A program made the translations under genes and the position numbers. A stretch of DNA of 64,000 nucleotides, from positions 15,996,001-16,060,000 of the forward strand of contig NC_091995.1 of the NCBI RefSeq assembly GCF_044704955.1, in the 5' to 3' direction. This stretch comes from Pristiophorus japonicus. Taxonomy: Eukaryota. Under the pieces are notes generated by a model. That model did not search any database and was not told the DNA's origin. It saw only the letters and a program-made list of their open reading frames with translations. The first letter of the stretch is position 1. Each line of letters opens with the position of its first letter. Positions 17,473-62,275 of this stretch are shown here, piece by piece.

Positions 17473-17775
17473 GTGGTGTACGATCTACTGAAGTCTCTCA
17501 AATTCCTATTTGATAGACACGGAGATAGTTGTACATATATATATTCCTTTCAATTCTGCTTGTTACTAAGCTTCATGCTTTCAGTTGCTAGTTGGAGGCA
17601 ATGTACAGGCAATGTACAGAACTCGTCCACGCAGTTCACTCTGACGGTTTCAAGGTTTTTATCTTTCACATTAACAATGAAAAACGTTAGGATAAGAAGT
17701 CTTCCTCCAGTCAACAGCTGTCACGAGTGCAAATCTTTGGCTACTAATTTGGGGGCTGTCTGTGATTATTGTTTC
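17473..17775 (+). pseudogene. Degenerate NKp30-like Ig V exon (pseudo-exon)
   Basis: Strong acceptor tttccttttttacttatag. Phase-1 start GVRSTEVSQIP, then with frameshifts GDSCTYIYSFQ...SVASWRQ...VQNSSTQF...SRFLSFTLTMKNVR...NSC/RVQIFG, collinear with V-domain landmarks. Stop at 17511 and the B-strand Cys appears to be replaced by Tyr. Confidence 0.55.
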
Positions 17776-17904
17776 CTGTGCCACCTGCAGCAAACAATTG
17801 TACAGCATGACACACATAACACGGGCCATCTTTATCATTGAGAAAACCAGTTGTAAGTCTGAAACCCATTGTAAGGAACACCACAGAAGGTGGAAATAAT
17901 CAGG

Positions 17905-18432
17905 TAAAGGGCGCTGGAGAGGGTGCAGAGTAGATTTTAAGGATGTGACCAGAAATGCAAGCGGATGCATATCAGGAAAGCATGAACCGGCTGGGTATCT
18001 GTTCACTTGAAAAAAGAAGGCTGAGCGGTGACTTAATAAATGTCTTTAAAATTATGAACGCTTTTGATAGAGTGGATACAGAGAGAATATTTCCACTTGT
18101 GGGGAAGAGTATAATGAGAGGCCATCGATATAAGATAGTCACCAAGAAATCCAATAGGGAATGCAGAAGAACATTCTTTACCAAAGAGTGGTGAGAATGT
18201 GGAACTCGCTGCCTGCCACAGCGACTGGTTGAAGCAAATACTTTAGCTGCATTTAAGGGGAGACTAGACAAGCATATGATGGAGAAGGGAATAGAACGTT
18301 GTGCTGATAGATTTAGTTGAGGAAAGACAGGGGGAGGGTCCAGTGGAGCATAAACGCTGGCTTGGCCCGGTTGGGCCGAATGTCCCGTTTCTGTGCTGCA
18401 CATCCAATCTAATTCTATGTAATTCTATGTAG
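17905..18432 (+). mobile_element. CR1 3' fragment
   Basis: ORF YQESMNRLGICSLEKRRLSGDLINVFKIM; (aattctatgt)n tail. Confidence 0.85.
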
Positions 18433-19049
18433 TTAGTAATAAACTATGATTTATAAAATCTTTGGATTGTCGGAGGCTGGGTAGACTGAGAGAATTGAGA
18501 AACCCCGCAGTGCGAACGTCCCGGTAAGAATGACTTCAAGTTGCACATTTGGCATTAGTCTTTATTTGAAAAGAATGAATGTTCAAGGAGGAGAAAGAAA
18601 GCGCATGGCGGTGCACTTGTAGTATGAGAGGGGCAAGAGAAATTCAGAAAAAAATATATAGTAGCATCGATAAAAGACAAGTCAGAACCGCTGCAATTAA
18701 AAAAAAAAGATGTATAAGTAAATTTCCAGCTAATATTTAGGTATTCAAAAGCATTTCAGTGTATTGCACTTTTTCATTATTTCTGAATTATATCAATTAT
18801 CCCTGACAGTTGGCTGCACAATGGTAGCAGCAACTTGAAAGAGCGGAGAGGTTTTTGAAATGAAAAAGAAACAGTACCACCTATTTAAAATTTCATACAA
18901 CATGTATTCTACATCAATGTTCAAAAACTAGTTATAACACAAAACCAAAAGATTCTAATGAAATATTCTTGTCATACAGTTTGTTTGATAAAGCTGGGTG
19001 CTGAAGCAGATATTTGATAATAATCAGACGATGCCGCGCTGGTTGAAAT

Positions 19050-19136
19050 CTACTGCATGGTCCTTCTTGGCGGTGGTGCACGTTTTTTGTTTGCCTTAAC
19101 TTCATTATCATGACAACGAAGGTAACCATCTTCATG
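19050..19136 (-). CDS. Gene A putative terminal coding exon ([28 protein letters not shown])
   Basis: Acceptor atgttcttgctccaaag, phase 0 matching exon 6, Tyr and Pro/Arg-rich tail, TAG at 19050-19052; an AATAAA lies downstream on the minus strand at 18561-18566. Confidence 0.62.
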   Translation of the reverse strand, partial: HEDGYLRCHDNEVKANKKRAPPPRRTMQ

Positions 19137-28100: not shown

Positions 28101-31100
28101 ACTCTCTGACACCTGCTCCTACCTTCCCCTGGACCATGAACCCATCACTGAACATCAAACCATAATTTCCTAGACCGTCAGTGACCTCATCTCCTCTGGA
28201 AATCTTCTGTCCACAGCCTCCAACCTCATATTTCCCCAACCCCACACAGCCCGCTCCTATCGCCCTTCCCAAGATCCACAAATAGGACTGACCCAGTAGA
28301 TCCATCGTTTCAGTCTGTTTTAGCCCCACAGAACTTATTTCTTCCTATCTCAACTCTATTTTTCTCCCCTGGTCCAGTCTCTTCCCACCTACATCCGCGA
28401 TTCCTCTGGCATACTCCATTACTTTAACAGTTTCCAGTTCCTGGCCCCAACTGTCTCCTTTTCACCATGGACGTTCAACCCCTCTACACTTCCATCCCAC
28501 ACCAGGATGGCCAGAGGGCGCTATGCTTCTTCCTCGAGCAGAAGCCCAACCAGTCCCCATCCACCACCAACCTTCTCCGCCTAGCTGAACTTGTTGTCAC
28601 ATTAAACAACTTCTATTTTTTCTCCAAATTAAAGGTGTTGCTAATGCATTGATGATAGTATCAGTGCCGGTTCCTGATCCCGCCCTGAACTAGAAGCTTT
28701 CATTCATTTTGCATCCAATTTCCACCCTTCCCTCACCTTCACATGGTCTATCTCTGATTTTTCCCTTCACTTCCTCGATTTCTCTGTCTCCATTTCTGGG
28801 GATAGGCTTTCGACCAGTATCCACTGTAAGCCCACTGACTCCCACAGCTATCTGGACTACACTTCCTCCCACGCTGCATTTTGTAAGGACTCAATTCCAT
28901 TCTCCCAGTTTCTCCATCTCTGTCGCACCTGCTCTGACAATGCCACCTTTCACACTAGTGTCTCTGACATTCTTTCTTTTTCCTCAACATTTTTCAGCCA
29001 GTGTGGACACGATGGGCTCAAATGGCCTCCTTCTGAGCTGTAAATTCCTATGTTTCTATTCCTCTCCGTCGTGGTTCAAATGGCCCTTCGACTATGTCCG
29101 TTCTATTTCTTGCACCTCTACTCTTGCCCCTTCCCCTCCCTCTCAGAACCACGACTGGGTTCACCTTATCCCAATCATTCACCCCACCAACCTCCATGTT
29201 GAATGGATCATCATCCGCCATTTCTGCTACAGGCAGCGTGATTGCATCACCAATCACATCTTCCCATCCCCTCCATTCTCAGCGTTCCAAACGGATCGCT
29301 CTCTCCACGATACCTTGGCTCTTTCCACAGACAAGCCAAACACCCCCTTCCCTTCCCACGGCATCTTCCCGTGCAAGCACAGGAGATACAACATCTGCCC
29401 TTTTACCTCCTCCCTCGCCACGATCCACGGCCCCAAATATTCCTTCTTGGTGAAACAGCAATTTACTTGTACTTCTTTCAAATTAGTATACTGTATTCGC
29501 TGCTCACGATGTGGTCCCCTCTACATTGGGGAGACCAAGCACAGATTGGGTGTCCACTTTGCGGACCACCACCGTTCAGTCCGTAAGGGTGACCCTGAGC
29601 TTCCAGTAATTTGTTACTTTAATTTTCCACTGCACTCCCACTCTGATATTTCCATCCTCGAACTCCTCCACTTTCTCAACTCAAGCTCGAGGAACAGCAT
29701 CTCATCTTTCGTTTAGGCACTTTACAGCCTTCTGGACTCAACATCGAGTTCAACAATTTCAGCGCATGACCTCTGGCCATGTTCGGCTCCCTCCCCGCCT
29801 CCCCACCCATCCCTCCGCCACCCCACCCACCCCCCCCTCCCGCCCCCACCACCAACACCACCACCACCATCTTATGTTTTTTTTCCTTCTCTCTTCTTTT
29901 TTTGTCTCTTTGTCTCGAATGGCAGCTGGTCATTACTATTCCATTCATACCCTATCCAGATTAACCCTTTTCTGACTTCTGTGATTATCATTTCAATTCG
30001 GACATTATCCCTTTTGTCTCTCTAATCTCTCCTGCCTTCCACCCTATTACAGACCTTGCCTTTTGTTCTTTCTTTCCCTCCTCCTTTCAGTGCTTAAGAA
30101 TGTGATCTTTTCGAATATTCGGCAGTTCTGATGAAGGGTCGTCAACCCAAAACTTGACTCTGTTTTTCTCTCCACAGATACTGCAGACCCGGTGCTATTT
30201 CCAGCATTCTCTGTAGATAGACATGTAGTTACCTGAGGAATGGAATGATTTTGTACTTTCCTTCTGGGTGATAATTCTGTTTGGGACAAAACAGAAATAA
30301 AGTAAAATAAGGAATACTTAAGGAAACTCCTTTCAATTATAACTGAGGTTTTGGTGGTTAACAATTCCATTTTCAAAATGTACTCTCGGATGCATTTCCA
30401 ACCAGGTATCATTTCGGCTATATTGCGTGCTCCTCCTGGAATTACCCTGCTCATGAAAGATCAGAGGCTCAAGCAACAGCACCTCATCTTTCGATTTGGC
30501 ACTTTACAGCCTTCGGGGCTCAACATCGAGTTCAACAACTTCAAACTATAATCTCTGCCCCTTTATTCTTTTTAATTATTTTCCTCTTTTTCTGTTTTTT
30601 TTCTCTATCCCATGGCAGCAGTTGAATCTACAAACCCCATTTACACCTTATCTAGACTCATCTTTTATTTTCATAACATCCCATTACCACCTCCTTTGGC
30701 CTCACACCATCATCCCTCATGTCTTTTAATCTCTCCTGCATTCCACACTATCAGGTAGACTTTCGCTTTTGTTCTTTCCTCCCCTCCCCCTTTTCCTTTC
30801 CCTGTTACATCTCTAACTCATTCCAGTTATGACCTGAAACGTTAACTCTGTTGCTCTCTCCACAGATGCTGCTGAGTATTTCCAGCATTTTCTGTTTTTA
30901 TTTCAGATTCCAGCATCTGCAGTATATTGCTTTTGTGCTGTTTCGAGACATGCACAATTCACCCCCTCGCGGTTTGAAGTAGATATTAAACAAGACAGAA
31001 ATGCTTATAAGAACATCAGAACATAAGAATTAGGAACAGGAGTCGGCCATCTAGCCCCTCGAGCCTGCTCCGCCATTCAACAAGATCATGTCTGATCTGG

Positions 31101-34100
31101 CCGTGGACTCAGCTCCACTTACCCACCCGTGCCCCATAACCCTTAATTCCCTTATTGGTTAAAAATCTATCCATCTGTGACTTGAATACATTCAATGAGC
31201 TAGCCTCAACTGCTTCCTTGGGCAGAGAATTCCACAGATTCACAACCCTCTGGGAGAAGAAATTCCTTCTCAACTCGGTTTTAAATTGGCTCCCCCGTAT
31301 TTTGAGGCTGTGCCCCCTAGTTCTAGTCTCCCCGACCAGTGGAAACAACCTCTCTGCCTCTATCTTGTCTATCCCTTTCATTATTTTAAATGTTTCTATA
31401 AGATCACCCCACATCTTTCTGAACTCCAACGCGTGAAGACCCAGTCTAATCAATCTATCATCATAAGGTAACCCGCTCATCTCCAGAATCAGCCTAGTGA
31501 GTCATCTCTGTACCCCCTCCAAAGCTAGTATATCCTTCCTTAAGTAAAGTGACCAAAACTGCACGCAGTACTCCAGGTGCGGCCTCACCAATACGCTATA
31601 CAGTTGCAGAAGGACCTCCCTGCTTTTGTACTACATCCATCTCGCAATGAAAGCCAACATTCCATTCACCTTACTGATTACCTGCTGCACCTGCAAACTA
31701 ACTTTTTGGGATTCATGTACAAGGACCCCCAGGTCCCTCTGCACCGCAGCATGTTGTAATTTCTCCCCATTCAAATAATATTTCCTTTTATTGTTTTTTT
31801 TTTCCAAGGTGGATGACCTCACACTTTCCAACATTGTATTCCATCTGCCAAACCTTAGCCCATTCGCTTAACCTATCTAAATCTCTTTGCAGCCTCACTG
31901 TGTCCTCTACACAACCCGCTTTCCCACTAATCTTTGTGTCATCTGCAAATTTTGCTCCACTACACTCTGTCCCCTCTTCCAGGTCATCTATGTATATTGT
32001 AAACAGTTGTGGTCCCAGCACCAATCCCTGTGGCACACCACTAACCACCGATTTCCAACCCGAAAAGGACCCATTTATCCTGACTCTCTGCTTTCTGTTA
32101 GCCAGCCAATTCTCTATCCATGCTAATACATTTCCTCTGACTCCGCGTACCTTTATCTTCTGCAGTAACCTTTTGCGTGGCACCTTATCGAATGCCTTTT
32201 GAAAATCTAAATACACCACATCCATCGGCACACCTCTATCCACCATGCTCGTTATATCCTCAAAGAATTCCAGTAAATTAGTTAAACATGATTTCCCCTT
32301 CATGAATACATGCTGCGTCTGCTTGACTGCACTATTGCAATCTAGATGTCCCGCTATTTCTTTCTTAATGATAGTTTCAAACATTTTCCCCACTACAGAT
32401 GTTAAACTAACCAGCCTATAGTTACCTGCCTTTTGTCTGTTCCCTTTTTTAAACAGAGGCGTTACATTAACTGCTTTCCAATCCGCTGGTATCTCCCCAG
32501 AGTCCAGAGAATGTTGGTAGATTATAACGAATGCATCTGCTATAACTTCCGCCATCTCTTTTAATACCCTGGGATGCATTTCATCAGGACATGGGGACTT
32601 GTCTACTTTGAGTTTCATTAGCCTGTCCAGCACTAGCCCCCTAGTGATAGTGATTGTCTCAAGGTCCTCCCTTCCTACATTCCTGTGACCAGCAATTTTT
32701 GGCATGGTTTTTGTGTCTTCCACTGTGAAGACCGAAGCAAAATAATTGTTTAAGGTCTCAGCCAGTTCCACATTTCCCATTATTAAATTCTCCTTCTCAT
32801 CTTCTAAGGGACCAACATTTACTTTAGTCACTCTTTTCCGTTTTATATATCTGTAAAAGCTTTTACTATCCGTTTTTATGTTTTGCGCAAGTTTACCTTC
32901 GTAATTGCATTTATAGAGTACCTTCCATGACCTCAGAAACTCCCAAGAGCTATAGAACCCGTGAAGTACTTTTGAAGTTGCAAGATACCTAGCCATCTAC
33001 ATATAGGTACACGGATTGGCTCAATCTCATATGATTGGGGTTTTTTCTTCCGTTTTAGTTATAAATGGCTCACGGATTTGTAAGGCATCTAGAAATAATT
33101 AAATGTTTAACATTGTTCATTGTCAGGATGCCTTATGGCTTAATGTGTCAGGATACAATTTAGCTGCCTTTGCTGCTTAGCTGCTCATGAGATACAGGTT
33201 GAGTGATTCGTGTCTGTTGACTTCTTTTTGTTGCTACATTGTGAAACGAGATAAAGAAGATAGTCTTGAGATTGGAAGTGGGACAATAGGCCAGGATGGT
33301 AAACATGTTAGCATCTAGTTTTTTGTAGGAACTATCGCATTTCTGGGGGTCTTGCTCACAATAACACTTGTCATTCCATAAAGAATCAGCAAGGACAGTG
33401 TGTGTGACTAGAGACCTAAATAGATCTCACACTTTCCTTAATAACTTGTAGAGAGAGTCAGGATGGAAAGGATTAACGAAATGTACTTCTCTACCCAGAG
33501 AAAAACAGGAAAATTGTGTTTATTGTTCTGAATTTCTAATGATTAAAGACATTGTGTGTGTGTGGACTTGGTCAGACACTATAAAAGGATTACACCACAA
33601 CCATATTTGGTTGACCAGATTCGAATTGTCTTACAATTGAAGAACAAAGCAGAATCTGACGAGCAAAACTTCCGTTTGTGTGATACCAAGGGGGACAAAT
33701 TGGGATCATTTTTGCCTCCGATAACTTTTCTACTGGGCAACACACTGCTACTGACTCCGGTTTAATTCCCTAGGAGTTTACTGGCGGTGGCAACCGGTAG
33801 TGCCCAGCACTGCTGCACTGGCAATGACAATGTCATCACCGTGCGCAGTGCCCCATTTTTGCCACTGAACAAAAATTGCCTCGCACCCCCCCTGAAGCTG
33901 CAGCAGGCAATGATAGCAATAACTTCAGGGCACATGAACGGGATGGCAGGTGGATCGCAGGCTGCTACCAAAAGGGGAGGTGTTGGCCATGTTGGAAACA
34001 AATGTCAGCAGTTTCTGGCGCACCTCGTTGATGCTTTGAACGCGGGATCCATGCCACAATCTGTCAGCCCAGAACATCACTTGAGTGCCAGGCTTTTAAC

Positions 34101-37100: not shown

Positions 37101-40100
37101 ATTTGTTGGGATACACTACGTTTGCAGGTAAATGAAAATAGAGTAAGTGATGTGTGACAAGAGAAAGAGCAGATTGAGGTAACACTGACAATGCATGTAG
37201 CACGTATTGGTGATGTGGCTACCACTGCTACAACCCAAGGGTTAGGGAGCCGAGAAAAAATATAGAAACGGGATATTTGCAAACAGAGGAGATTGAAACC
37301 GGGGTTAGAAAATGCTAGAGAAGCCTTGCGTGAGCTTATGACTTAGCCAATGAGATTCACGCAATGTAAACTAAAACTATGAATTTAAGGGAAACGAGGA
37401 GCTCTTGATTCTGATGGAGGGTGAGGAGCTGTCTAAAACAATGAGAGATCAAGTGGATAGTCCGATGGAGAATAAAAAGTTCTTTTAGAGAAAGGGCGGA
37501 AGCTCTTGTGCTATGCTGCTCACTGCTGTGCAGAGATAACCACAAATGTTATGACCAAGGTATGGTTACATATGGAAAAACTCTCATTTGAAAATAAGGT
37601 CATCTGAATGTGGTATAATCTTATTGGAACATGGTTGTTCAGCTACAGTCAATGGCTGCTTCACCCTATGAGGACTTTTTAAAGAAGGGAGTAGATATAA
37701 ATAGAAGCATTGGGGAAGGAAATTCTGAAATTTAATGAAAGACTGTTGACCAACAAAGAGCAGTGGCTTATTCAGGAGTATTTAAAGTTTCTATAAACTG
37801 GGGCCATCTCGAAACTGAGCTTAAAAATGGACAATTAGCCCAATTGCAGATGAATGCAAATATCTTCTTTTAAGGATATTGAGTTCTTCTCGATATGGGT
37901 TTGAAACTCAAATCCACAGACCGAGTGTCGGATCAAATAATAAATACTGGTTTCCTGTGGCTGACCATTACAGACAGCCAGTTATTTAAACTGTATTAAT
38001 ATTACTTGCATGTATGACTTGGGATTGTCACATAGACTTTGGCATTTTTGACTTAATTAACCCATAAGAAGGAATTCATATTTTACGGTGGATGAGAGTG
38101 AATAAGGCTTGAATGTTTGAATATGATTAAGATGTCTGGAGTTGTTATGAGCGTGTGAATGTAGTTGTTAAAATTAATATATGTTCATTTTAATTTAGGG
38201 TTGTTCACCCAAATAAATGGAATATTTAAGGAAGATGTTGTGCTTTCGACAAGTATTTGATTGTATACAACTATACAACTGCTCAAAAGCACAGCTTTTT
38301 TGTAATAGGTAAAACCAGCTTTGGAATATTACGAAGATACAATTCGAACATTTTCAACGTTTATTTTAATTGACTTAGCAGCACGTCTGAAACTACTGCT
38401 GTGCTGGACGACTCCAAATGGTTAAAATTATGCGGAGGAAAGTTGTTAGTGTGTTTGGGTGAGATTGAGTTCATAAAATACCTGTATTTTGATGATAAAT
38501 AGAGAAACATGGTTTAAAATTACTTTGAATTTGAAGCCTTTTGAATTTTAAAGCCATGACTGGTCATGAAAGAGCATCTTTGTAGCCCCGCTATGTTGCC
38601 TCAGTGACCAATATGTTAAAACAAACCATTGCTGCTGAACCTTTTCTGGGCCTTCCATTTTCAGTTCATAAATTTGGCTGCTATCTGATTAAATTCTAAT
38701 CTGTATGGAGATTCGTTTCTTTTTAAGCTGAAAGGATGGCGTGGTTAGTTCCACGCTGCTCTGATGAAGGATACACCAAACTACCTGAGTACTTCTCTTA
38801 GTAATGGCAATTAGTGGTTCCAGATGGAATGATATTTGTCTAGCAGCATGATGCATCCAAAACTTTTATTATTTTCAAAGATTGGCATGTTTGTATGCTC
38901 TAGTTATGCTAGATATTTCTAATCCTGGGTCATCAGAAAAGGTTACATTGAAGCAATACAGGAACATACCTACAAGCATGGTTATACAAGTACAAACACA
39001 CACATGTACACACACACATACATACACACACATACACATGCATATATACACACACACACATATACACAGACATGAGCATTCTTCATCTTAATGCAAACAG
39101 TTCAGTCTCTTAAGCAAGCCAAATAAATATGCGAACCACTTACCCGGCTCTTTTGCCAAATCAAAAGAAGAACATTCTCTACAGAATAAGAAGATATTTT
39201 GCAAAAGTGTTATCTAAATGTAATTTTTCATAGTGCTCAATCTTTAAGAATAAAGCATTACATGATTACAAATCAGCAAGCAACCTATTCATTGGCTTAC
39301 CTGACAAGCAAAGCGTAAGCTGTAAAAGAAGAGAATAGCGAAACTCAACTGTGGTTAATACTGTTATTGATAATATTGTTGTCGATTAATGCAACAACAC
39401 AATGACATCATCTCTCAAAATTATGAAAATCCTCTCATTGTGCATATAACTCTGCTGAAGTGGGATTACTTCAAATGTGGCTGTTGTTATAAATTGTGAA
39501 TTAACATTAGGATTTTAATAATAATGTGCTGTGCTGCGAATATTTTTTTTATTTACTGGTCAATGTCTACTTATTTGTTTTAATTTTCGCTATCTTTGGG
39601 TGATGATAACAAGTTATATTATCAAGACAAACTTACATGCTATCACACATTCCCTGAAAAATATATTATCACAAGTTTGTAAAATTACACAGTATACAGC
39701 ATAGAAAGTGACCATTCGACCCAATAAATTCAAGCCTATCATGCTCCACACGAGCCTCCTCCCACCCCTGTTCATCTAACTCTATCAAGACATCCTTCTA
39801 TTCCTTTCTTCACTACGTGTTTATCTAGCATCTTCTTAAAGGTATATGTGCTATTTGCCTCAATTACGCTTTGTGATAACGAGTTCTACATTCTAACTAC
39901 TATCTGGGTAAAGAAGTTTATCTAGAATTACCTATTGGATTTATTATTACTATCTTATATTTGTGGCCCCTAATTCTACTCTTTTCCACGAGTGGAAATA
40001 TCTTCTCTACGTCTACACTATCAAACCCTTTGATAACCTTAAAGACCTCTATCAGGTCACCCCTCACTCTTCCTGTTGCTACAGAAAGGATCCCCAGCCT

Positions 40101-43100
40101 GTTCAATCTTTCCTGATAGGTATAACCTCTCAGATCAAGCATCAGCCTAGTAAAAAAAGATTGCACCTTCTCCAGTGACTCTATGTCCGTTTTATAATAT
40201 GGTTTCCAGAAATAATTATATTACTTCAAATGTGAAAAGCATCCAATCGTAAGGTTCCTAATTCATTGCAAAATGGAAAATGTATTGAACCTTCACCACA
40301 CCATTGCAAAAAGGAAATTGTTTCATATTAGAAACATAGAACCATAGAAAATAGGTGCAGGAGTAGGCCATTCGGCCCTTCGAGCCTGCACCACCATTCA
40401 ATGAGTTCATGGCTGAACATGCAACCTCAGTGCCCCATTCCTGCTTTCTCGCCATACCCCTTGATCCCCCTAGTAGTAAGGACTACATCTAACTCCTTTT
40501 TGAATATATTTAGTGAATTGGCCTCAACAACTTTCTGTGGTAGTGAATTCCACAGTTTCACCACTCTCTGGGTGAAGAAGTTTCTCCTCATCTCGGTCCT
40601 AAATGGCTTACCCCTTATCCTTAGACTGTGATCCCTGGTTCTGGACTTCCCCAACATTGGGAACATTCTTCCTGCTTCTAACCTGTCTAAACCTGTCAAA
40701 ATTTTAAACGTTTCTATGAGATCCCCTCTCATTCTTCTGAACTCCAGTGAATACAAGCCCAGTTGATCCAGTCTTTCTTGATATGTCAGTCCCACCATCC
40801 CGGGAATCAGTCTGGTGAACCTTCGCTGCACTCCCTCAATAGCAAGAATGCCCTTCCTCAAGTTAGGAGACCAAAACTGTACACAATACTCCAGGTGTGA
40901 CCTCACCAAGGCCCTGTACAATTGCAGTAACACCTCCCTGCCCCTGTACTCAAGTCCCTCGCTATGAAGGCCAATGTGCCATTTGCTTTCTTAACCGCCT
41001 GCTGTACCTGCATGCCTGATGTACCATAACACCTAAGTCTCGTTGCACCTCCCCTTTTCCTACTCTGTCACCATTCAGATAATAGTCTGTCTCTCTGTTT
41101 TTTACCACCAAAGTGGATAACCTCACATTTATCCACATTATACTTCATCTGCCATGCATTTGCCCACTCACCTAACCTATCCAAGTCACTCTGCAGCCTC
41201 ATAGCATCCTCCTCGCAGCTCACACTGCCACCCAACTTAGTGTCATCCGCAAATTTGGAGATACTCCATTTAATCCCCTCGTCTAAATCATATGATGAGT
41301 TATTGTTATTGTTATTGTGAGGCATAAGTTAGAAAATGTGACGATTTCATAACATGGCTACAATTTTTAATATTTAAACTACCTTTATTTCGTTGAATGA
41401 GGACGGTGATTACGATGAGCAGAATCACAGTAATCAGCAATGCCCCTCCACCTACCACTGCAATCCAATACCAATCAAACTGAAACTTAGTTAAACTGTT
41501 TACTTTGCCACAAGTATCTGTAGAAAGAGAAAAACAATAATGAGTTATTTGTTCATAAATCTAGGGAATAAGTATAACAGCAAATAAAAAAGTGGGACAA
41601 AGAGACACCTATAGAAATAAATAGGGAGACTGGCGCACAGGCAGAAATGCAACTTAATACAAAAAATATGAACGGGAAAGGGTGGGGGAAGACAGAGATA
41701 GCGACATACTGAATCTATGGGCAGAAAGAGTGAGAACGACAGAGCGGCAGAAACTGGGGGAGAACTGCACAACAGCACAATAATACATCATGAAGGAAAG
41801 AATGAAGAAAACAGTAGAGAGTGTTAAATCTGGAACAGATATCCCAAAGCCTTAATGTAATATTGTTAGGTTTCCTTACGCTTTACGGTAACCAAGGTTC
41901 CATTACCGACAACCTTTTCCTGGCCCATTATTTCAATCTCGCAATAGTACATGCCAGACTCGCATTCTGTCATATTCTTAATGTGGATTGATGCATCCTT
42001 CTTCAACTTGAATGCCTTCTCGTCGGGCTTTGTTACTCTTTTCTTGTATTGTGGAGAATCGAAGTCTAAGGGAGTGTTGCCTTTTCTCCAGCTGGTGGTA
42101 CCCACCCCTTTTAAACTAAAGGTGCAATTTAAAGTCACACTGTTGCCTTGGAATATATGAATTGAAGAAGGGGATTGCACTATTGGAGATGAAGCAGCCT
42201 CCATACCTAGTGACACACAAAGAAACACAAGAATTGATTAGCCATTGTTACTGGGTGAAGTATTACGCATTTAGAGTATTACACACTTAGAGCAATGCGT
42301 ACAGTTTTGGTTGCCATATTATAAAAAGAATATAGAGGCACTGGAGAGGGTACAGGGAAGATTTGCAAGGCTGATACCAGATATGCGAGGGTATACATAT
42401 CAGGAAAGGATGAACAGACTGGCTCTCTTTTCTCTTGAAAAAAGAAGGCTTTGGGGTTAACTAATCGAGTTCTTTCGACTTCTGAAAGGCTTTGATGGAG
42501 AGCGAATGGTTCCACGTGTGTGGAAGAGCATAACTAGAGGCCATCAATTTTAAGATAGTCATCTAAAAATTAAAATGGAATTCAGAAGGAACTTCTATGC
42601 CCAGAGTGTGGTGAGAATGTGGAACACAGGGAATGGTTGAAGCGAATAGTTCAGATGCATTTAAGGCGAAGCTAGACAAGCATATGAGGGAGAAGGGAAT
42701 AGAGGGTTATGCTGATAGAGTTAGATGAGGAATGACAGGAGGAGGCTCGAGTGGAGCATAAACGCCAACATGGACTTGTTGGGCCGAATGGCCTGTTTCT
42801 GTGCTGCATAACCTATGTAATCCTATTTAATTGCCGGTGACTTAAAAGGTTGAAGATTTTAAGCATGGGTTTGAGCGCATTATTCTAGGATGGCACTTCA
42901 ATGCAGTACTAAGAGAGTGCATTTGTGTCTCCCGCACTCCCCCACCCCCCACACCCTCCCCAACCACCGCCCCCCACCCAAAAAATGGAGAGCGTATCGA
43001 CTTCACAAAAACACCACCAAAACAGCATATGAGCCATTCACTCATTGCACTTTGCGTGACGTTGCTTTAAACAAAGCGCCTGACAAGTTTATAAGAAACT

Positions 43101-45891
43101 TAAGAAATAGCAGCAGGAGTAGGCCACATGGCCCCTCGAGCCTGCTCCGCTACCTATTATGACCATGGCTGATCCGATCATGCACTCAGGTCCACTTCTC
43201 TTCCCGCTCTCCATAACCCCTTATTCCCTTATTGTTGAAGAAAGTGCCTATTTCTGTCTTAAATGTATTCAATGTCCCAGCTTCCACAGCTCTTTGAGGC
43301 AGTGAATTCCACAGATCCACAACCCTCTGTCTACAAAGCGACAACAATTACAATTCAATAGATATTCATTGGCCATGAGGTGCTTTAGGATGGTTTGAGG
43401 TTGCCAACAATGCAATATAATGGCAAGTTCTTTCTTTATCTCATGCAACCACAAATTACACTTTGGCTTTCATTCAGTAGTATGTCATTATTATTTTCAA
43501 AGGAAATTATTATATGAATGAAAGAAAGAGAGAAAGAAAGAGAGAAATAAAGAAAAACAGAAAGAAAGAATGTGAAAGAGAGAGTGAAGGAAAGATAAAG
43601 AAAGAGAGAAATAAATAAATAGAGGAAAAAGAAAGGAAGAGGAAGAAAGAAAAAAAGAAAGAAAAACGAAAACTTTGCATTTCCAATGCTTCATTAGTAA
43701 CAGTATCAAGTAATAAATTACTTCAATATACTTGATATCTTTATATAATTATCTACGGTTGCTTGATTTACATATGAGGGAAATATAAGAAAAAAAGTGT
43801 TTAGTTTATAGAAGTGGAATATGACTGAAATCCTGGCATTCAATATTAGCGAATTGCATATTCAACAACAAGCTACATGTTATACAGTAAATCTCTACAA
43901 ACTGCATAGATCATGAATTTGGGGAAATTGCTCCATGTGAATTCAGTGATCGGATCAACAGTAATTATCAACTCTTATCTACCAAGCAACAGTCAGAAAA
44001 TTAATTATTTCAGGAAAATGTGGTCAATATGAGGGGTTTATGAACCTGTTCGAACCGCTGGTTATTTATTGAAGCCATGCTCTATTTGCTCTTGTGAACA
44101 TAAGGTCCCATTTGTTATTACAGATTAAACCAAGTTTTTGTATACTAAGCTGAATGACTTCAGTGACCAACTTTTTATACCATGCTAATAAATAAATCAG
44201 CTTAATTTACTCCCTAGATTTAAAGATTAGCATTTCCGTCATTATGCCATGATTATATCCTTTAAACCAAAGCATAAAATCGTTATGTATAGATATATAG
44301 GACGTGTTACATCAAAAACATCATTATTGTAATAATTTCACACACAAAAAGCCTCATTACTGGTCTTCCATATATTTGTGCCCATGAAATCCCTGGGATG
44401 TCTTATTCATTTAAATGCTAATAAGGTTGAAATATGAAAATAATCGATTTTCAAATATATGTCGCATTATTAAATAAAAAAAATAAAAATAGTGTTCAAC
44501 TAACAAGCAATACATATTACTCTGATTGCTATCCGAAATGTGTGGCCTAACTCCAGAGAAAACATTGTGCTAGGAAGATCAACAGAGCACTATAGTCACT
44601 ATTCTGAATATGGTACATATGGCTGCAACTGCCTTGGGGAAAATCAATTCGGTGATTATATGGGTTGATTTTCAAACATAAATGGCACAGAGTGTTAATT
44701 CCAAAATTAACAGCTCATTCGGAATTCAGTGTTGACTTGAACTCTTACTACCAGACGCCTGAGGTTGTATATAATGCAATGTCATCACTGATCGTGCTCT
44801 GCAAACCATAAGTTAATTACTTTGATGCTAAACACAAATGGTGCCTTAAAAGACTATTGTGGCTCCGTAGCGTGAATCATTTACATCAATCATTTATGGA
44901 AACTTTGTGTCTATTTTGGGCTGCATTGCAAGAGATAAAATAATTAAACTTGGAGTGACCACTATATTTAGCCCTGGTGAGAACATAAGTGAACTACTGC
45001 GTGCAGCTTTAGTCTCCCTGTTTCAAAAAGGATATTCAGTCACCAGAAGTGGCACAGGGGAGGGCTGATTCCGGACCTTAAGGGAATGACGAATGATAAC
45101 AGTATCTGAAAGGGGATATGATAGAAGTATTTAAAATGATTAAAAAAATACTTGGCTGAATTGGATCCAAGCAAGCTTTTCTGTCGGTTACAGGATATTT
45201 ACAAATTAAAAACAGAAAATACAGTAGGAAATGCAGGAGGAATGTTTTTACTACAAGGGTGGTAAAGTGCGTGAATCTTGTTATTGGCAGGGGTGGTGGA
45301 TCGAGAATCTTAAATAGATTTCAGGAAGGAACTCAACAGGTTTCAGGAAGGAACTAGAAAGGCTCTTGTCGACAAATGGGATTCGGGAATATCAGAAATA
45401 CATCAAGGGAATAAGATGGACCAGCGGTATTCGCCTACCAGAAACTATTACTATGTTGCGTGCATTCTTTCATTCCCAGAGGCCACATACCTACTAACAA
45501 ACGTACCTAGAAATTGTTTTCTGTAGTTACATATATTTTATGGAAAAAACAGGAAAACAAGTGAAATGCCGTTAATAAGATGCTTCGATGGTGGCTGAAC
45601 CAGTTCCATGCATAAAGACATTGCAAAGTATTCATCGTTTCGGGGTTAAATTTCAAAGATACTAAAGCTAAGGTTGGAACTGGTATTTATTCCTGCCACC
45701 TCAAAAAACAATATAGGCACTTGTTAAGGCATGCTTCTCTATTATTTTTAAAAACTACATGCAATCATTCTATGTCTCATTAATGATTATGATTTTCTAT
45801 AATATTTGAACAATAAAACTACAGCTAAGCACTTACCCGTCAGAAACATTGCAATCAGAAGGAAAATAGCGGTCATTGCACACCGATCCAT
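19050..45891 (-). CDS. Gene A (spliced): NKp30/NCR3-like, CD28-family-related single V-domain type I membrane receptor, ~233 aa; join(45837-45891,41880-42206,41383-41517,39301-39319,39144-39178,30233-30276,19050-19136)
   Basis: Seven GT-AG-flanked exons with compatible phases (1,1,1,2,1,0) total 702 nt with no internal stop: [31 protein letters not shown]...[129 protein letters not shown]. The first five exons are secure; the last two are inferred from phase and splice signals. Confidence 0.8.
19845..21170 (-). mobile_element. CR1 LINE with a younger CR1 nested at ~20440-20925
   Basis: ORFs [25 protein letters not shown] and [25 protein letters not shown]; two separate 3' tails. Confidence 0.85.
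22020..22650 (+). mobile_element. Degenerate CR1 3' fragment
   Basis: Remnant FWSPYF..DIEALDK.QKRFTR; aattctatgt tail. Confidence 0.75.
22735..23270 (+). mobile_element. L2-clade LINE 3' fragment
   Basis: L2 C-terminal remnants: [47 protein letters not shown]. Confidence 0.72.
24400..26765 (+). mobile_element. CR1 LINE ORF2 (EN end, RT, 3' UTR), decayed
   Basis: ORFs [59 protein letters not shown]; ttctatgattctatg tail. Confidence 0.92.
27645..30212 (+). mobile_element. Penelope-like retroelement (RT + GIY-YIG endonuclease) with an inverted 5' terminal repeat
   Basis: [28 protein letters not shown] (RT); [22 protein letters not shown] (GIY-YIG). 27645-27925 is the reverse complement of ~29985-30212. 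Confidence 0.9.
27745..27786 (-). ncRNA. Minimal hammerhead-ribozyme-like motif in the Penelope terminal repeat
   Basis: Minus strand reads cagtt-CTGACGA-agggt-tgtcg-accc-GAAAC-tttaattctg, with core boxes and stem II present. The stem III region differs from GAAACGTTAAC seen at ~30835. Confidence 0.55.
30233..30276 (-). CDS. Gene A exon 6, 44-nt cytoplasmic exon ([15 protein letters not shown])
   Basis: Long pyrimidine tract ending ...ttctgttttgtcccaaacag, donor CAG|gtaact, phase 1-0; lies in a small unique island between Penelope pieces. Confidence 0.7.
30460..30940 (+). mobile_element. Penelope-like element 3' end
   Basis: [26 protein letters not shown] followed by the pLTR terminus ccagcatctgcagta. 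Confidence 0.82.
31010..32905 (-). mobile_element. CR1 LINE ORF2 (RT) with 3' end, relatively young
   Basis: The 402-aa ORF carries [45 protein letters not shown]; (ttcttatg)n tail. Confidence 0.95.
34495..36955. mobile_element. Triple-nested CR1 elements: outer minus (34495-34760 and 36135-36955), middle plus (34765-36130), inner minus (35165-35492)
   Basis: Each host element resumes collinearly after its insert; three separate 3' microsatellite tails. Confidence 0.85.
38994..39070. repeat. (CA)n/(TG)n imperfect microsatellite
   Basis: Direct inspection. Confidence 0.9.
39144..39178 (-). CDS. Gene A exon 5, 35-nt cytoplasmic exon ([12 protein letters not shown])
   Basis: Acceptor tcttcttattctgtag, donor CGG|gtaagt, phase 2-1, complementing exon 4. 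Confidence 0.8.
39301..39319 (-). CDS. Gene A exon 4, 19-nt cytoplasmic micro-exon (AYALLV)
   Basis: Acceptor ttctcttcttttacag, donor CAG|gtaagc, phase 1-2. Confidence 0.8.
39690..40215 (-). mobile_element. CR1 3' fragment
   Basis: [19 protein letters not shown]...[13 protein letters not shown]. Confidence 0.82.
40325..41292 (-). mobile_element. CR1 LINE 3' part
   Basis: ORFs [10 protein letters not shown] and [22 protein letters not shown]...; (ttctatgt)n tail. Confidence 0.92.
41383..41517 (-). CDS. Gene A exon 3, stalk plus transmembrane
   Basis: Acceptor ttgtttttctctttctacag, donor AAG|gtagtt, phase 1-1: (H)[44 protein letters not shown]. Confidence 0.9.
41880..42206 (-). CDS. Gene A exon 2, Ig V-set (V-J type) domain, NKp30/NCR3-like
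   Basis: Acceptor tttctttgtgtgtcactag, donor C|gtaagg, phase 1-1. Shows VQSP start, B-strand VTLNC, C-strand W (TSWRK), E-strand ASIHI, F-strand ESGMYYC and J-like GNGTLVTV. The ending CEIEIMG...GNGT resembles NKp30 CRVEVLG...GNGT (recalled). Confidence 0.93.
42270..42830 (+). mobile_element. CR1 3' fragment just upstream of the V-exon acceptor
   Basis: Remnant [24 protein letters not shown]; CR1 UTR. Confidence 0.82.
43090..43330 (-). mobile_element. CR1 3' end
   Basis: agcaggagtaggccac...cccctcgagcctgctcc as in the other CR1 UTRs. Confidence 0.8.
43515..43672. repeat. (GAAA)n purine-rich low-complexity tract
   Basis: Direct inspection. Confidence 0.85.
45837..45891 (-). CDS. Gene A exon 1, signal peptide
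   Basis: ATG GAT CGG TGT...CTG ACG G|gtaagt = [18 protein letters not shown](G); hydrophobic leader with a consensus phase-1 donor matching the V exon. Confidence 0.85.
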
Positions 45892-49690: not shown

Positions 49691-50078
49691 NNNNNNNNNN
49701 NNNNNNNNNNNNNNNNNNNNNNNNNNNNNNNNNNNNNNNNNNNNNNNNNNNNNNNNNNNNNNNNNNNNNNNNNNNNNNNNNNNNNNNNNNNNNNNNNNNN
49801 NNNNNNNNNNNNNNNNNNNNNNNNNNNNNNNNNNNNNNNNNNNNNNNNNNNNNNNNNNNNNNNNNNNNNNNTATCTCTGACTATCTCTCTAGCTNNNNNN
49901 NNNNNNNNNNNNNNNNNNNNNNNNNNNNNNNNNNNNNNNNNNNNNNNNNNNNNNNNNNNNNNNNNNNNNNNNNNNNNNNNNNNNNNNNNNNNNNNNNNNN
50001 NNNNNNNNNNNNNNNNNNNNNNNNNNNNNNNNNNNNNNNNNNNNNNNNNNNNNNNNNNNNNNNNNNNNNNNNNNNNNN
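49691..50078. other. Assembly gaps (N runs 49691-49871 and 49895-50078) within a (TCTA/TCTG)n tract
   Basis: N characters with microsatellite flanks. Confidence 0.98.
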
Positions 50079-54935: not shown

Positions 54936-54950
54936 TGCGCCATCTAGTGG
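54936..54950 (-). promoter_or_regulatory. CTCF-binding motif
   Basis: Minus strand CCACTAGATGGCGCA closely matches the vertebrate CTCF core; lies in unique DNA between genes B and A. Confidence 0.5.
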
Positions 54951-56245: not shown

Positions 56246-56579
56246 AATAGGCAAAGCACAGCCACACAGAGGGGATGTTAAGATAGACCACAGATCACTG
56301 GCTCCAGACAGCACGCTAATGATAACCCAATCCAGTGTTCCAACCCGCTGGTCAGTAACCTGCTTCCTCACTTAGCCACCAATACGAAAGCATCCTCAAC
56401 GCTGACATCTGTAATCATGTCACTACAAGCAAGCTAGCAGACGTGCATCACATGGTACTCCTGCAAATGCCCAGGGCACATGTTGTACAGATCTGGAATG
56501 AAAGGTCAATCTCTGTAAAATTATTTCGAAAGAAATAAAACTAGGTTTGGGGCAGTTAGGCAAATTGGGCTGAAGCTCC

Positions 56580-58378: not shown

Positions 58379-58395
58379 TTGTCCTTCCACACTGT

Positions 58396-58611
58396 TTAAA
58401 TCTTATCTTTTCCCCTGAGGTCACGGGAATTGGCGTATGTAACCTCAGGTCGTCGGGGTTTGGAGAACACGGGCGTACTCAATGAGTTTATTGAGGCGTA
58501 TTCGACGTGATCTACGTTCCTGTTCACTCTGTCCTTCTTTCTCCCTTGCTGTATATTCAGCTGGGCGTAATACTGAGGCTCTTCCCGAGCAACCGTATGA
58601 TGGGGAAATCC
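58396..58611 (-). CDS. Gene B terminal exon with tyrosine motifs QYYAQL, VEYASI, VTYANS
   Basis: Acceptor attttaatacttttag; 71 open codons to TAA at 58396-58398; ITIM/ITSM-like motifs. Confidence 0.82.
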   Translation of the reverse strand, partial: GFPHHTVAREEPQYYAQLNIQQGRKKDRVNRNVDHVEYASINSLSTPVFSKPRRPEVTYANSRDLRGKDKI

Positions 58612-61600
58612 CTAAAAGTATTAAAATATTATTATCAAGAAACAGCAATTTTCATAACTGGAACGTTGTGTTTTTTTTAAAATTTCAGTTCAATTGCCAC
58701 ATTCCCTTCCACACTGTGTTAAAATCAAGAATCGTGGCACTTTCTCCTGATTTAACTTTTGCCTTACACGCAGTCGGAATGGGCCAACACCTTAAATGAA
58801 TGGACGTCCCCTGACTCTCACAAGCTTATTAGTAAACTCGATCTTGTTTCAATCTCATTAAGTATTTTTAAGTTGTCTTTTCTGCTACTTCAGCATCAGT
58901 GGATCCCTGTTTTTCTACAAGGTTTCAATAAAAAAAATCGCCAAAATCACAATATCACAAATATGTTACCTATCACAATGTTTATAGCGAGACAAGAAAA
59001 TCATCCCTATCAAAGAACCCCATTTAGAAATCATCGGGTGCACCATTAAATTCATCTTTCTGTGTTTAGGAAGGCGATGGATACAAGGAAGAGTTTCCAC
59101 TACCAGAGCATGGCGGATAACATTGGCCTGATACAAAGTACAGCTTCCTCGACTCTATAAATGGACTATGTCAGGAAGCACTGCTGTTCCAGAATTACAA
59201 CATTTTCCTATTGTCCACTAGTATTGGAACCTTTATAATGAGTGATCTGAGTGAGATTGTCAGTTCGATACAAATTTAACGGCAAAATTTTGACTGAGGT
59301 AAATACAAAATGGGGATTGAATTGGGATGCAATAAGCCCGTTTCAATGTGACCAAGTACAAACAGAAATGATTAGGAGGTAATTAATTGTTGGCGGGGTC
59401 GCAAAATGGGCGAAAGCAAATTGACCCACTGTGTTCCACCTCAACGGAATTTGTTTTCCATTAACTACAGGGCTAACAGTTGGAAATCACAGTTATCCTT
59501 CACCGCCTAAGCCCAAATTTATCCCTTAGATGTGCATCGCGTTAGATTGAGTTGATTGAAATTCAAACGGTAATTAAGTAGGAGAGTGGTAGAAGTTTGG
59601 AACTCTCGGCAGTTCATGCTATGTCAATTGTTAAGTTTAAAGCTGAGATTTTTGTAACCGAATGGTATTATCGATATGGGCAAAGGCGCATACATGGAGT
59701 TAGATCGCAAATCAGCCATGGTCTCATGGAATGGTAGAGCAGGCTCAAAGAGCTCAATGGCCTCCTCCTGTTCATGTGCTCCTATGTTCCTATGATAGTG
59801 GCATTGCTGCGCATTCCATCAGTTTCAATCAACTGTCATTCAGCAATGTGTATGTGTATAGAATCATAAAAACCCAGAATGGGGCCATTTGGCCGATCGT
59901 GTCTGTGTCGGCTCTTTCAAAATGTTACCAAATTAGTTCTATTTCCCTGCCATTTCCCATAGCCCTGCAAATGGTTCCCCTTCAAGCCTTTATCCAACTC
60001 CCTTTTGTAAGTTACTATTGAATCTGCTTCCACCGCCCTTTCAGGCAGAGCGTTCAAGACCATAACAACAACCTGTATACTTTTCCCAATTACGTTAAAT
60101 CTGTGTCCTCTGGTTACCGACCCTCCTGCCACTGGAAAGAGTTTCTACTTATTTACTCTAGCAAAACACTTCATAATGTTTAACACCGCTACTAAATCTC
60201 TCCTTAACCATCTCTGCTCGAAGTAAAGCAAAGCCAATTTCTCCACTCTCAACGTAACTGAAGTCCCGCATACATGGTACCATTATAGTAAGTCTCCTCA
60301 GCACCACCTCTCAGACCTTGACACCCTTCCTAAAGTGAGTCCATAATTGGACACAATACTCTTGCTGAGTCCTAACCTACATTAAAATGGAACCTGAAAG
60401 CTGAATGGCTGCTTTACATTTTAGATAATGGTGCATTTTAACCCTTGGAACCTTAAATTATTGGGACGTTAATTACCTGTTACAATTGTATATCACTTCA
60501 CATGTAAACATCTCATTGTTCTTACCTGTGTTGTTGCCAGTACGTCACCGGAATCTGTGGTAATGAGAACATGCCAGAATTATTTTGTGCCAAAAAAAAC
60601 TATATTCGTCATCTAATAGGATGTTTAATGCAGCCAGTTAAATAGTAATAAGAACAAACAAAGAATCTCATCTCGGATCACAGATCAAAACTGTAACAAA
60701 AATTGAAATGCTTTCCCTTCCTATTAAAATCTCGAGCAAAAACGAAATAAAGTACAAGTAAAATTGTTAAATAAACTCTGATTCTTCCCCTGTCCATGAC
60801 AGCATCTACACCATGTTAGGACAATTCAGTAACAACATGTTGAGACTCAGGGACAGCCTGCAGTCTGCTCCCTAGTTACATCATGTCAGCTGTGGCTCAG
60901 TGGGCAGAACTCTCGCTTCTGAGTCAGAAGGTTGTGGGTCCCAATCCAGGAACACCAAAACGTCTAGACTGACACTCCACTCCAGTGCAGTGCTGAGGGA
61001 GTGCTACAGTGTCGGAGGTGCCATCTTTTGGATGAAACATTAAATCGAGGCCCCATCTGTTCTCTCAGGTGGACGTTCAAGATCCTATGGCACTATTTCT
61101 AAGAAGATCAGGGGAGTTATCCCGGTGCCATGCCCAATATTTATCCCTCAATCGAAAAACAGATTATCTGGTCATTATCGCATTACTGTTTGTGGGAGCT
61201 TGCTTGGGTGCAAATTGGCTGCTGCGTTTCCCACATTATAACAGTGCCTACACTCCAAAAATATTTCATTGGCTGTAAAGCGCTTCAGAAGTCCTGTGAT
61301 CGTGAAAGACGCTATATAAATCCAAGTCTTTCTTTCTTTATCATCATTTGAACAAAAAGTTGTTTTTAATTCTCTAGCAATCACAATTGCTTGCCGTTCT
61401 ACTATAAAAAAAACCCTCACCTAAATCCTCAATTTACCGTTAAGCACTTAGAAATGTTGCGCAGCAATGGCTCTGGTCGCTATGTGTATCAGCATGGTCA
61501 GTTACTTAAGATGTTCTATTCTAGCAAATTCGTAAATATATTTTAATCGAGTTGTGTTCAATTTGATCAACAAAGCGTGCAGCGGAATGATGGTGATAAT

Positions 61601-62275
61601 TAGCCTTATGGCCCCTGCACCCAAGAACAAAGGATGAAAGACTTGCCTATATCTAGCATCTTTCACGACCAGCAGATGTCTCAAAGCGCTTTACAGCCAA
61701 TTAGTTACTTTTGGAGTATAGTCTCTATTGTCATGTTGGAAACACGGCAGCCAACTTGCGCACAGCAAGCTCGCACAAACAACAATGTGACAATCACCAG
61801 ATAATCTGTTTTTATGTTGATTGAGGGATAAATATTGGCCCCAGGACACCGGGGATAACTCCCCTGCTCTTCTTGAAATGATGTCATGGGACATTTGATA
61901 TCCAGCTGAGAGGGCAGACATAGTCTCGGTTTAACGTCTCATCCAAAAGACGAAAAGAGAATAAAAGCCCAGGCGCTCCTATTAGTTAGACACTCTGGCG
62001 ACCTTCATGTCATGTCTCCCATATGGATAATAGCCTGCTGAATATGATACCAAACAAATCCTTGCAGGCTGAGGAACATTATCCCTACATCATTCATACA
62101 TTCAGAAGATGGAAATATTTGATCAGATATACGTGAAGATAACTAAAATACAAACCTTTATTTCCCCATATCAGTCGAAATGTCAGAAATATGATTAAGA
62201 CAGCTATCAAGGCCAGTGCGACCAGCAAAACCGGTGTTATATCGGTCTTCGCATTCTTTGGTACCTTTGTGCGGC
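58396..62275 (-). CDS. Gene B (partial, spliced): inhibitory ITIM/ITSM-type immunoreceptor, TM and cytoplasmic exons; join(62156-62275,60526-60554,58396-58611). Ectodomain probably beyond the window end
   Basis: Phase-compatible exons give xRTKVPKNAKTDITPVLLVALALIAVLIIFLTFRLIWGNK-DSGDVLATTQ-GFPHHTVAREEPQYYAQLNIQQGRKKDRVNRNVDHVEYASINSLSTPVFSKPRRPEVTYANSRDLRGKDKI*. Confidence 0.8.
59570..60375. mobile_element. Two tail-to-tail CR1 3' fragments (plus 59570-59795, minus 59855-60375)
   Basis: CR1 UTR tails; ORF GGSVTRGHRFNVIGK...NALPERAVEADS. Confidence 0.75.
60526..60554 (-). CDS. Gene B 29-nt cytoplasmic micro-exon (DSGDVLATTQ)
   Basis: Acceptor gttctcattaccacag, donor CAG|gtaaga; phase 1-0 links the TM exon to the tyrosine-motif frame of the last exon. 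Confidence 0.78.
60885..61340 (+). mobile_element. Full-length tRNA-derived SacSINE1/DeuSINE-like SINE
   Basis: tRNA-like head (gtggctcagtgg...ctctcgc...gagtcagaaggttgtggg), conserved central domain and gctatataaat tail. Confidence 0.82.
61636..61952 (-). mobile_element. SacSINE1/DeuSINE-like SINE, inverted relative to 60885-61340
   Basis: Reverse complement of ~61025-61335. Confidence 0.82.
62156..62275 (-). CDS. Gene B transmembrane exon
   Basis: Acceptor tcagtctgtttatttcag, donor AAG|gtttgt, phase 1-1; uncharged hydrophobic stretch VLLVALALIAVLIIFLTF; ends AATAAAG| (NK) exactly as the gene A TM exon does. Confidence 0.82.

Follow-up and report, generated by a model that had tools for sequence, protein, structure and literature searches.

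Two neighbouring receptor-like genes in the genome of the sawshark Pristiophorus japonicus raise two questions: to which receptor family they belong, and whether they form a pair with opposite signals. Both questions were addressed in a stretch of 64,000 nucleotides (nt) of contig NC_091995.1 (RefSeq assembly GCF_044704955.1, positions 15,996,001 to 16,060,000, forward strand), hereafter the window. The window contains two neighbouring minus-strand genes, A and B, each with a transmembrane (TM) exon that ends in AATAAAG ahead of the GT donor, in phase 1. An earlier interpretation made from the letters alone, here called the sequence-only reading, had described them as NKp30/CD28-family-like members of a candidate paired-receptor locus. 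Our analysis indicates that they are probably two adjacent, same-strand elasmobranch genes of the NKp30 (NCR3) family, with gene B of the type that carries an immunoreceptor tyrosine-based inhibitory motif (ITIM) and gene A representing an old, separate orthologue group with another tail.

Family placement of the V domains

The V exon of gene A matched the Pfam V-set domain of the immunoglobulin (Ig) fold with an E-value of 1.4e-13. When this exon alone was compared with the PDB, NKp30 chains matched the full domain at E 2e-6 and were the best single-domain match. A profile of the orthologues gave NKp30 as the best single-domain match as well (E 1e-10), before T-cell receptor alpha V, NAR V and SIRP-alpha. 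The AlphaFold model of the V exon had a predicted local distance difference test (pLDDT) value of 92, and a Foldseek search with this model returned NKp30 at ranks 1–4 (E 8.6e-11, TM-score 0.79, root-mean-square deviation 2.5–2.6 Å), followed by SIRP-alpha.

Human NKp30 (NCR3; PDB 3NOI, 3PV6, 6YJP), the top match in both sequence and fold, has a single V-J Ig domain like that of gene A, and the two share an F-G region of the CxxExxGxxxxxGNGT type, including the NKp30-type GNGT J-like motif. They differ in that identity in the fold alignment is only 23% and in that the sawshark tails are assembled from micro-exons. Mammalian NKp30 signals via a TM arginine and the CD3-zeta/FcR-gamma adaptors and is not known to carry an ITIM; neither sawshark gene has a charged TM residue. 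SIRP-alpha was the second-best fold and sequence match to the gene A V exon. Its cytoplasmic ITIMs resemble the VEYASI motif of gene B, and SIRPs carry extra C1 domains, of which no sign was seen in the sawshark genes.

No V-like frame was found in 62276–64000, and the V exon of gene B lies beyond the window. Its sequence was taken from P0001 (UPI00398E9DB9), a P. japonicus 'uncharacterized protein' of 480 residues, which was found by a full-library HMMER scan with the gene A V exon (259 bits) and reproduces window exons letter for letter. Ahead of the gene B TM exon, P0001 contains V-set sequence (…SVTLNCTLHSEKK…TYYCNIVGEWPGVDNGNTLEIK) with the J-like motif NGNTLEIK. The nature of the gene B ectodomain had been named beforehand as a point on which the sequence-only reading could fail; according to this poor computed model, it is V-set.

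When the part of P0001 that represents gene B was compared with 177 other fetched proteins, the closest was NCR3 of the nurse shark (QTT61901.1, P0086; E 1.4e-24), with 33% identity over V domain, TM segment and tail. In a V-domain tree of NCR3-like rows with an unresolved backbone, gene B grouped with nurse shark NCR3 (97/90), and a Heterodontus NCR3-like protein came next (97/88). The V domain of gene A fell with its shark orthologues (97/95) in a clade of its own among the NCR3-like rows. We class gene B as the NCR3-proper type. Taken together, these comparisons support the placement of both predicted proteins in the NKp30 (NCR3) family as single V-J domain receptors and not as relatives of CD28. 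Of the two affinities named by the sequence-only reading, the NKp30 one is upheld by the top PDB and Foldseek match for gene A and by the nearest relative of gene B.

Exon models, transcript evidence and conservation

Gene A extends from 45891 to 19050 on the minus strand and comprises seven coding exons spanning 27 kb (Table 1). The model was built by tblastn and a splice-site scan, guided by P0001 and by the sawfish protein XP_051899784.1 (P0004, 235 residues). All exon borders are canonical AG/GT, with phases that run 1-1-1-2-1-0 from exon to exon. The leader is identical to that of Heptranchias at 11 of 18 residues and matched the Cetorhinus model in tblastn at E 4e-7. Micro-exon 3 was the top scorer against orthologue peptides among all AG..GT candidates in 19.1–39.1 kb, and it equals in length and resembles in sequence the corresponding parts of Heterodontus (ELSNRNKAQNHATHQ) and Heptranchias (ELPHRNKVQSHANHQ). 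The last coding exon was matched by the Heptranchias model (tblastn E 4.5e-7), with 11–19 of 28 residues identical to the orthologues.

Much of this architecture had been anticipated by the sequence-only reading. The two minus-strand genes with their characteristic TM-exon ends were seen as described, as were the micro-exons that follow both TM exons (three in gene A, of 19, 35 and 44 nt, and one of 29 nt in gene B). The far-flung exon model of gene A proved correct, including the 22-kb distance between the TM exon and the last exon downstream. It also holds that, among the exons of both genes, only the V exon of gene A appears in the list of open reading frames (ORFs) of the window.

Table 1. 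Coordinates of the gene A and gene B exons and of other features in the window.
Feature	Position	Strand	Description
Gene A leader, coding part	45837..45891	-	signal peptide; ATG 45891; donor GTAAGT; phase 1
Gene A V-J type Ig V-set exon	41880..42206	-	327 nt; phase 1 to 1; J-like VGNGTLVTV
Gene A stalk/TM exon	41383..41517	-	135 nt; phase 1 to 1; Cys in stalk; identical in P0001
Gene A micro-exon 1	39301..39319	-	19 nt; (A)YALLV; phase 1 to 2; in P0001
Gene A micro-exon 2	39144..39178	-	35 nt; starts (R); phase 2 to 1
Gene A micro-exon 3	30233..30276	-	44 nt; phase 1 to 0; weakest exon of the model
Gene A last coding exon	19050..19136	-	stop TAG 19052-19050
Gene B stalk/TM exon	62156..62275	-	120 nt; phase 1 to 1; identical in P0001
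Gene B micro-exon	60526..60554	-	29 nt; (D)SGDVLATTQ; phase 1 to 0; in P0001
Gene B last coding exon	58396..58611	-	YAQL Tyr 15, VEYASI Tyr 38, VTYANS Tyr 59; stop TAA 58398-58396
Two N runs	49691..50078		49691-49871 and 49895-50078; 23 read letters between; A-B spacer
LINE reverse-transcriptase remnant	31788..32996	-	in gene A long intron; Pfam RVT_1 E 7.6e-28

Transcript evidence was sought in one public run (X1, kind not recorded), whose contigs were placed on 39000–44999. The run holds 40% of the words sampled from 41383–42206. In a 458-nt contig, letters 91–418 aligned to 41880–42207 with 0 differences over 328 nt and no gap, and the alignment ended exactly at both borders of the gene A V exon. 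The depth bins fit 90 more contig letters on 41428–41517, in the TM exon (6.09 = 13.53 × 90/200), and the last 40 letters lie upstream of the placed stretch. The contig ends at both V borders and continues elsewhere, which marks it as spliced RNA; gene A is therefore transcribed, with its V borders as predicted. For the junctions proposed from sequence, the RNA check thus bore out the V exon borders of gene A through an identical contig, while the V-TM join follows from depth arithmetic. At the gene A micro-exons the X1 contigs gave no coverage, which is uninformative either way. The same run showed tens of thousands of contigs with 90–99% likeness at 40200–41400 and 42200–43400, in repeats flanking the gene A exons; those at 40.4–41.3 kb are of the long interspersed nuclear element (LINE) type, and these families are very abundant in sawshark RNA or DNA.

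The stretch upstream of the gene A start codon (45835–46093, minus strand) shows likeness to the extended N-terminus of LOC144695514, a basking shark model. The segment TSCQMWACQFS (46093–46061) is identical at 11/11 positions, and the likeness continues up to the gene A leader. This stretch could be a conserved 5' exon or untranslated region, or an upstream ORF.

The TM exons of both genes have polypyrimidine/AG acceptors, and the micro-exons after them have AG/GT borders with consistent phases. The nonamer AATAAAGGT was observed 4 times in the window against 1.05 expected, and at least 4 copies occurred in 2 of 100 shuffles. Three of the copies are on the minus strand, and two of these close hydrophobic exons, namely the TM exons of genes A and B. 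The third minus-strand copy (54738–54746) was set aside as a chance occurrence, having no hydrophobic segment before it. A basic end of the TM exon, NK or similar, is found family-wide: it reads ..QRNK/G in gene A, ..WGNK/G in gene B, RRNK in gene A orthologues, QQNK in nurse shark NCR3 and QRNK in a Scyliorhinus paralogue, and RRTK also occurs. The TM segment of gene B, VLLVALALIAVLIIFLTF, is uncharged, with an Arg at its cytoplasmic edge, and its exon ends in …PVLLVALALIAVLIIFLTFRLIWGNK/G.

The exon chain of gene A matches RefSeq proteins of ~235 residues in 14 elasmobranch species, comprising both sharks and rays. A word search with P0004 recovered such proteins from Mobula (two species), Hemitrygon, Hypanus, Rhinoraja, Narcine, Heterodontus, Chiloscyllium, Heptranchias, Carcharodon, Cetorhinus and Rhincodon. 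A word search with the gene A-type tail alone added the Scyliorhinus torazame orthologue and returned this orthologue group only. These proteins, including Pristis pectinata XP_051899784.1 and Narcine bancroftii XP_069771691.1, are gene A orthologues with the same exon chain and tail end and an invariant core AYALLVREC.S..S.KE. In databases they are named 'NCR3-like' (Heterodontus, Rhincodon) or 'myelin protein zero-like 1' (Carcharodon). Sawshark gene A differs from them in nothing essential; in SFDLAKEP it has Leu in place of Ser, and in EDGYL it has Gly. A complete 233-residue protein of the gene A type is encoded on a 1136-nt Logan contig, which must therefore be complementary DNA.

Conservation among the orthologues is uneven along the protein. 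Mean pairwise identity was 47% in the signal peptide, 52% in the V domain, 30% in the stalk, 72% in the TM segment, 91% in the juxtamembrane part encoded by micro-exons 1 and 2, 49% in the micro-exon 3 part and 57% in the last exon. The juxtamembrane part corresponds to the 18-residue stretch AYALLVRECSSFDSAKEP, and in the alignment RRNK-AYALLVRECSSFDSAKEP is almost invariant; the stalk Cys (C132) is nearly invariant too. The V domain of the window gene is 63–67% identical to those of shark orthologues, and its micro-exons 1 and 2 are identical to the compared orthologues at 5/5 and 7–10/11 residues, respectively. The Heptranchias perlo orthologue also has an isoform X2 (P0178, 146 residues) that consists of stalk, TM segment and tail without the Ig domain and may be a V-less splice form.

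Cytoplasmic tails and proposed functions

The last exon of gene B encodes three tyrosine motifs. One of them, VEYASI, is a canonical ITIM of the form (I/V/L/S)xYxx(I/V/L), a motif that ideally occurs twice at a distance of 20–30 residues. YAQL, located 23 residues upstream of it, has Gln at −2 and so is not a canonical ITIM, and VTYANS, 21 residues downstream, is not a canonical immunoreceptor tyrosine-based switch motif (ITSM) because its +3 residue is Ser. The tail of gene B thus has the ITIM/ITSM-like motifs ascribed to it by the sequence-only reading, with the ITIM alone canonical. The last exon of gene B (58399–58611, minus strand) also holds a second open frame, which ends in …LIEYARVLQTPTT and contains the ITIM-like IEYARV; this frame would be chosen if the 29-nt micro-exon were skipped.

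The gene B tail from YAQLNIQQGRKK to VEYASI is homologous to that of an NCR3-like protein of the lungfish Protopterus annectens (XP_043938374.1, P0066; YAMLNLKEGKKK...VVYASV), with 45% identity (E 6e-6), although the V domain of the lungfish protein is distant; a catshark tail is similar too. The homology with lungfish suggests that the tandem-ITIM tail is an old family module that goes back to the ancestor of cartilaginous and bony fishes.

Gene B and nurse shark NCR3 share the NK end of the TM exon, and their tails have matching HVEYASI and HVEYATI motifs, the latter closing the nurse shark protein. The deposited nurse shark TM segment is also uncharged, so that a charged TM residue is not defining for the fish members. 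Nurse shark NCR3 contains a micro-exon encoding AILRLKR at the same position as AYALLVR of gene A. Gene B, in contrast to nurse shark NCR3, is modelled without a micro-exon of this type and continues for 30 residues beyond the ITIM; a search for an AILRLKR-type 19-nt micro-exon in the first tail intron of gene B gave no convincing candidate.

The tail of gene A contains YALL, EDGYL and KKRAPPPRR, with its tyrosines in the contexts YALL and YLRC. As the sequence-only reading had stated, there is no canonical ITIM. Gene A likewise has no immunoreceptor tyrosine-based activation motif (ITAM) and no charged TM residue; its stalk Cys lies in the context HTCGK, and its TM segment is Gly-rich. A Pfam scan of the tails found no domain.

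Both genes would encode type I membrane proteins in which a single germline-joined V-J Ig domain is followed by a short stalk with a Cys, a TM segment free of charged residues and a tail encoded by micro-exons. Gene B would have two to three tyrosine motifs 21–23 residues apart, including the canonical ITIM. Binding of a ligand by its V domain would lead to phosphorylation of the ITIM or ITIMs by Src-family kinases, recruitment of an SHP-type phosphatase and inhibition of the cell. Judged by these motifs, gene B is most likely an inhibitory receptor acting via SHP-type phosphatases.

The product of gene A would probably form a disulfide-linked dimer through the stalk Cys. Its juxtamembrane stretch combines a YxxL/di-Leu motif with a conserved Cys, and its C-terminus is basic and proline-rich. 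The YALL motif lies ~6 residues from the membrane and thus resembles a YxxΦ/di-Leu sorting signal. Most likely, the predicted dimer docks a partner at the juxtamembrane stretch; this would be a conserved cytoplasmic protein, such as a sorting adaptor or an SH3 protein, and the basic proline-rich end could bind SH3 domains. Activating, inhibiting and trafficking-only roles are all three possible for gene A, and calling it costimulatory-type, as the sequence-only reading did for some members of the locus, is a guess.

A bolder proposal is that the NKp30 family has in gene A a third signalling design, not described before and without ITIM, ITAM or TM charge, in which the almost invariant module AYALLVRECSSFDSAKEP and an ED.YLHCH/basic-proline end dock the partner. 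We put this forward tentatively, as a possibility somewhat short of even, and it includes the view that a receptor of the gene A type has been retained since the common ancestor of sharks and rays.

NKp30 is among the few natural killer-type receptors with a traceable history between shark and human, and it is relevant to how antigen receptors arose from V-J genes. An ITIM-type tail common to shark and lungfish members may predate the split between cartilaginous and bony fishes. The gene A lineage adds a second, strongly conserved member with a tail unlike any known signalling module, and gives comparative immunologists a concrete protein to work with. The public sawshark model of the locus, as we read it, wrongly joins two genes. 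In practical terms the advance is modest: the NKp30 family and its multi-copy state in sharks were already known, and function is deduced indirectly.

Alternative readings and minor observations

The sequence-only reading proposed that A and B are paired receptors, that is, recent duplicates with like ectodomains and opposite signals in a birth-and-death array. The genes are indeed adjacent and on the same strand, and they share the TM-exon end and the micro-exon design while having contrasting tails. However, their V domains are only ~36% identical and fall into different starred clades of the tree, so that they do not form a matched pair, and both genes lack an ITAM as well as a charged TM residue. 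The presence of gene A orthologues in all 14 elasmobranch species found, together with 91% identity in the nearly invariant juxtamembrane stretch, indicates that gene A is old and stable, the opposite of rapid turnover. A paired locus with birth-and-death evolution of gene A is accordingly unlikely. We regard genes A and B as distant paralogues lying side by side, with a gene architecture that is shared family-wide, to which the term 'paired receptor' does not apply.

It is very improbable that gene A is a costimulatory receptor of the CD28/CTLA-4 family and not of the NKp30 family. Resemblance is offered by its single V domain, the Cys in a short stalk, the Gly-rich TM segment and the proline/arginine-rich tail end, and the CD28/CTLA-4 family (PMC11599192) likewise combines one V domain and a Cys in the stalk with a short tail that contains tyrosine. 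The nine CD28-family members are defined by FG-loop motifs of the PPP-type or EIP-type, and their tail motifs are YxNx, YxxM and EYEDM (Quiniou et al. 2024, PMC11599192). Neither a PPP nor an EIP motif was present in the FG loops of genes A and B (the loop of gene B reads YYCNIVGEWPGVDNGNT), and YxNx, YxxM and EYEDM were absent from both tails. The sequence and fold searches with gene A were both topped by NKp30, and CD28, CTLA-4, ICOS and PD-1 chains were absent from the 60 top-ranking sequence matches and from the matches listed among Foldseek ranks 1–50. With these defining motifs missing and no detectable preferential similarity, the CD28-family affinity suggested by the sequence-only reading was abandoned. 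The likeness of gene A to CD28 is confined to the Gly-rich TM segment and the unpaired stalk Cys, a CD28-family trait that is present in gene A though not specific to CD28.

P0001 consists of a repeat-derived N-terminus, a truncated gene B, and the V exon, TM exon and micro-exon 1 of gene A; it fuses B to A through a weak donor within the last exon of gene B. The catshark model P0007 (XP_038671257.1, 469 residues) is fused in the same way, and read-through models recur in the NKp30-type family. That B and A form a single read-through unit giving a two-V-domain protein, as these two models depict and as the 40 upstream letters of the X1 contig would allow (they could be either the leader or the P0001 join), can hardly be correct, since a TM segment and cytoplasmic tail ahead of a second ectodomain make an impossible topology, the weak donor would be needed, gene A comes with a leader exon of its own, which has a GTAAGT donor and matches the leaders of the orthologues, and the orthologues of other species mostly stand alone at ~235 residues. 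We take the B-A fusion in P0001 for an error of annotation or, at the very most, for read-through on a minor scale.

Several points weigh against the reading of the locus as two separate NKp30-family genes with the tails described. Transcript backing is limited to the borders of the gene A V exon, the V-TM join being deduced from depth; the micro-exon joins of gene A and the joins of gene B are predicted. Micro-exon 3 of gene A is backed by 3–8 identities out of 14. The V domain of gene B is known only from the poor fused model P0001, from outside the window, in which it is cut at its start and the N-terminus is repeat-derived. The V-domain tree includes no CD28-family or other outgroup sequences. 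At the position of the EDGYL Tyr, Mobula birostris has Leu and Narcine has His, and this Tyr is therefore neither a conserved phosphotyrosine site nor the key site of the tail. The functions of both genes are read from motifs throughout.

The decayed V exon that the sequence-only reading had placed on the plus strand was not recovered by tblastn with the V exon, by the family hidden Markov model (HMM) or by tblastn with 177 family proteins. With the family HMM run on all six-frame segments of the window with filters off, the best plus-strand match had E 7.7, and the plus-strand ORF at 17473–17841 gave no V-set signal. On the minus strand, the family V profile gave two collinear, non-significant bits at 21712–21925 (E 0.44 and 8.2); they lie in the long intron of gene A, and nothing else hints at a relic V exon. 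Another weak minus-strand match, at 18800–18880 (E 0.89), was discarded as not significant.

The window consists of vertebrate DNA rich in repeats, among them remnants of LINE reverse transcriptase. Many repeat fragments, including the LINE remnant in the long intron, have swollen gene A to 27 kb. Between the start codon of gene A (45891) and the stop of gene B (58396) lies a spacer of 12.5 kb; this distance is taken from assembly coordinates across the two N runs, and the exact spacing may differ. No exon lies within 3.8 kb of the N runs, which have TCTG/TCTA-type simple sequence on their flanks. The assembly gap is intergenic and interrupts no reading frame. A CA/TG-rich low-complexity tract at 55400–56400 produces long His-Thr and Cys-Val ORFs on both strands and represents simple sequence, not a gene.

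Further traits of the NKp30 family are linkage to the MHC and B7H6 as its ligand; no MHC marker gene was found in the window. In Polypterus senegalus, the protein KAG2469052.1 (P0164, 'PRC2A protein, partial') falls into a 90% cluster with an NKp30-like two-V protein. PRRC2A is an MHC class III gene in humans. If P0164 reflects a fusion with PRRC2A, it would hint at linkage of the NKp30 family to MHC class III in a basal bony fish.

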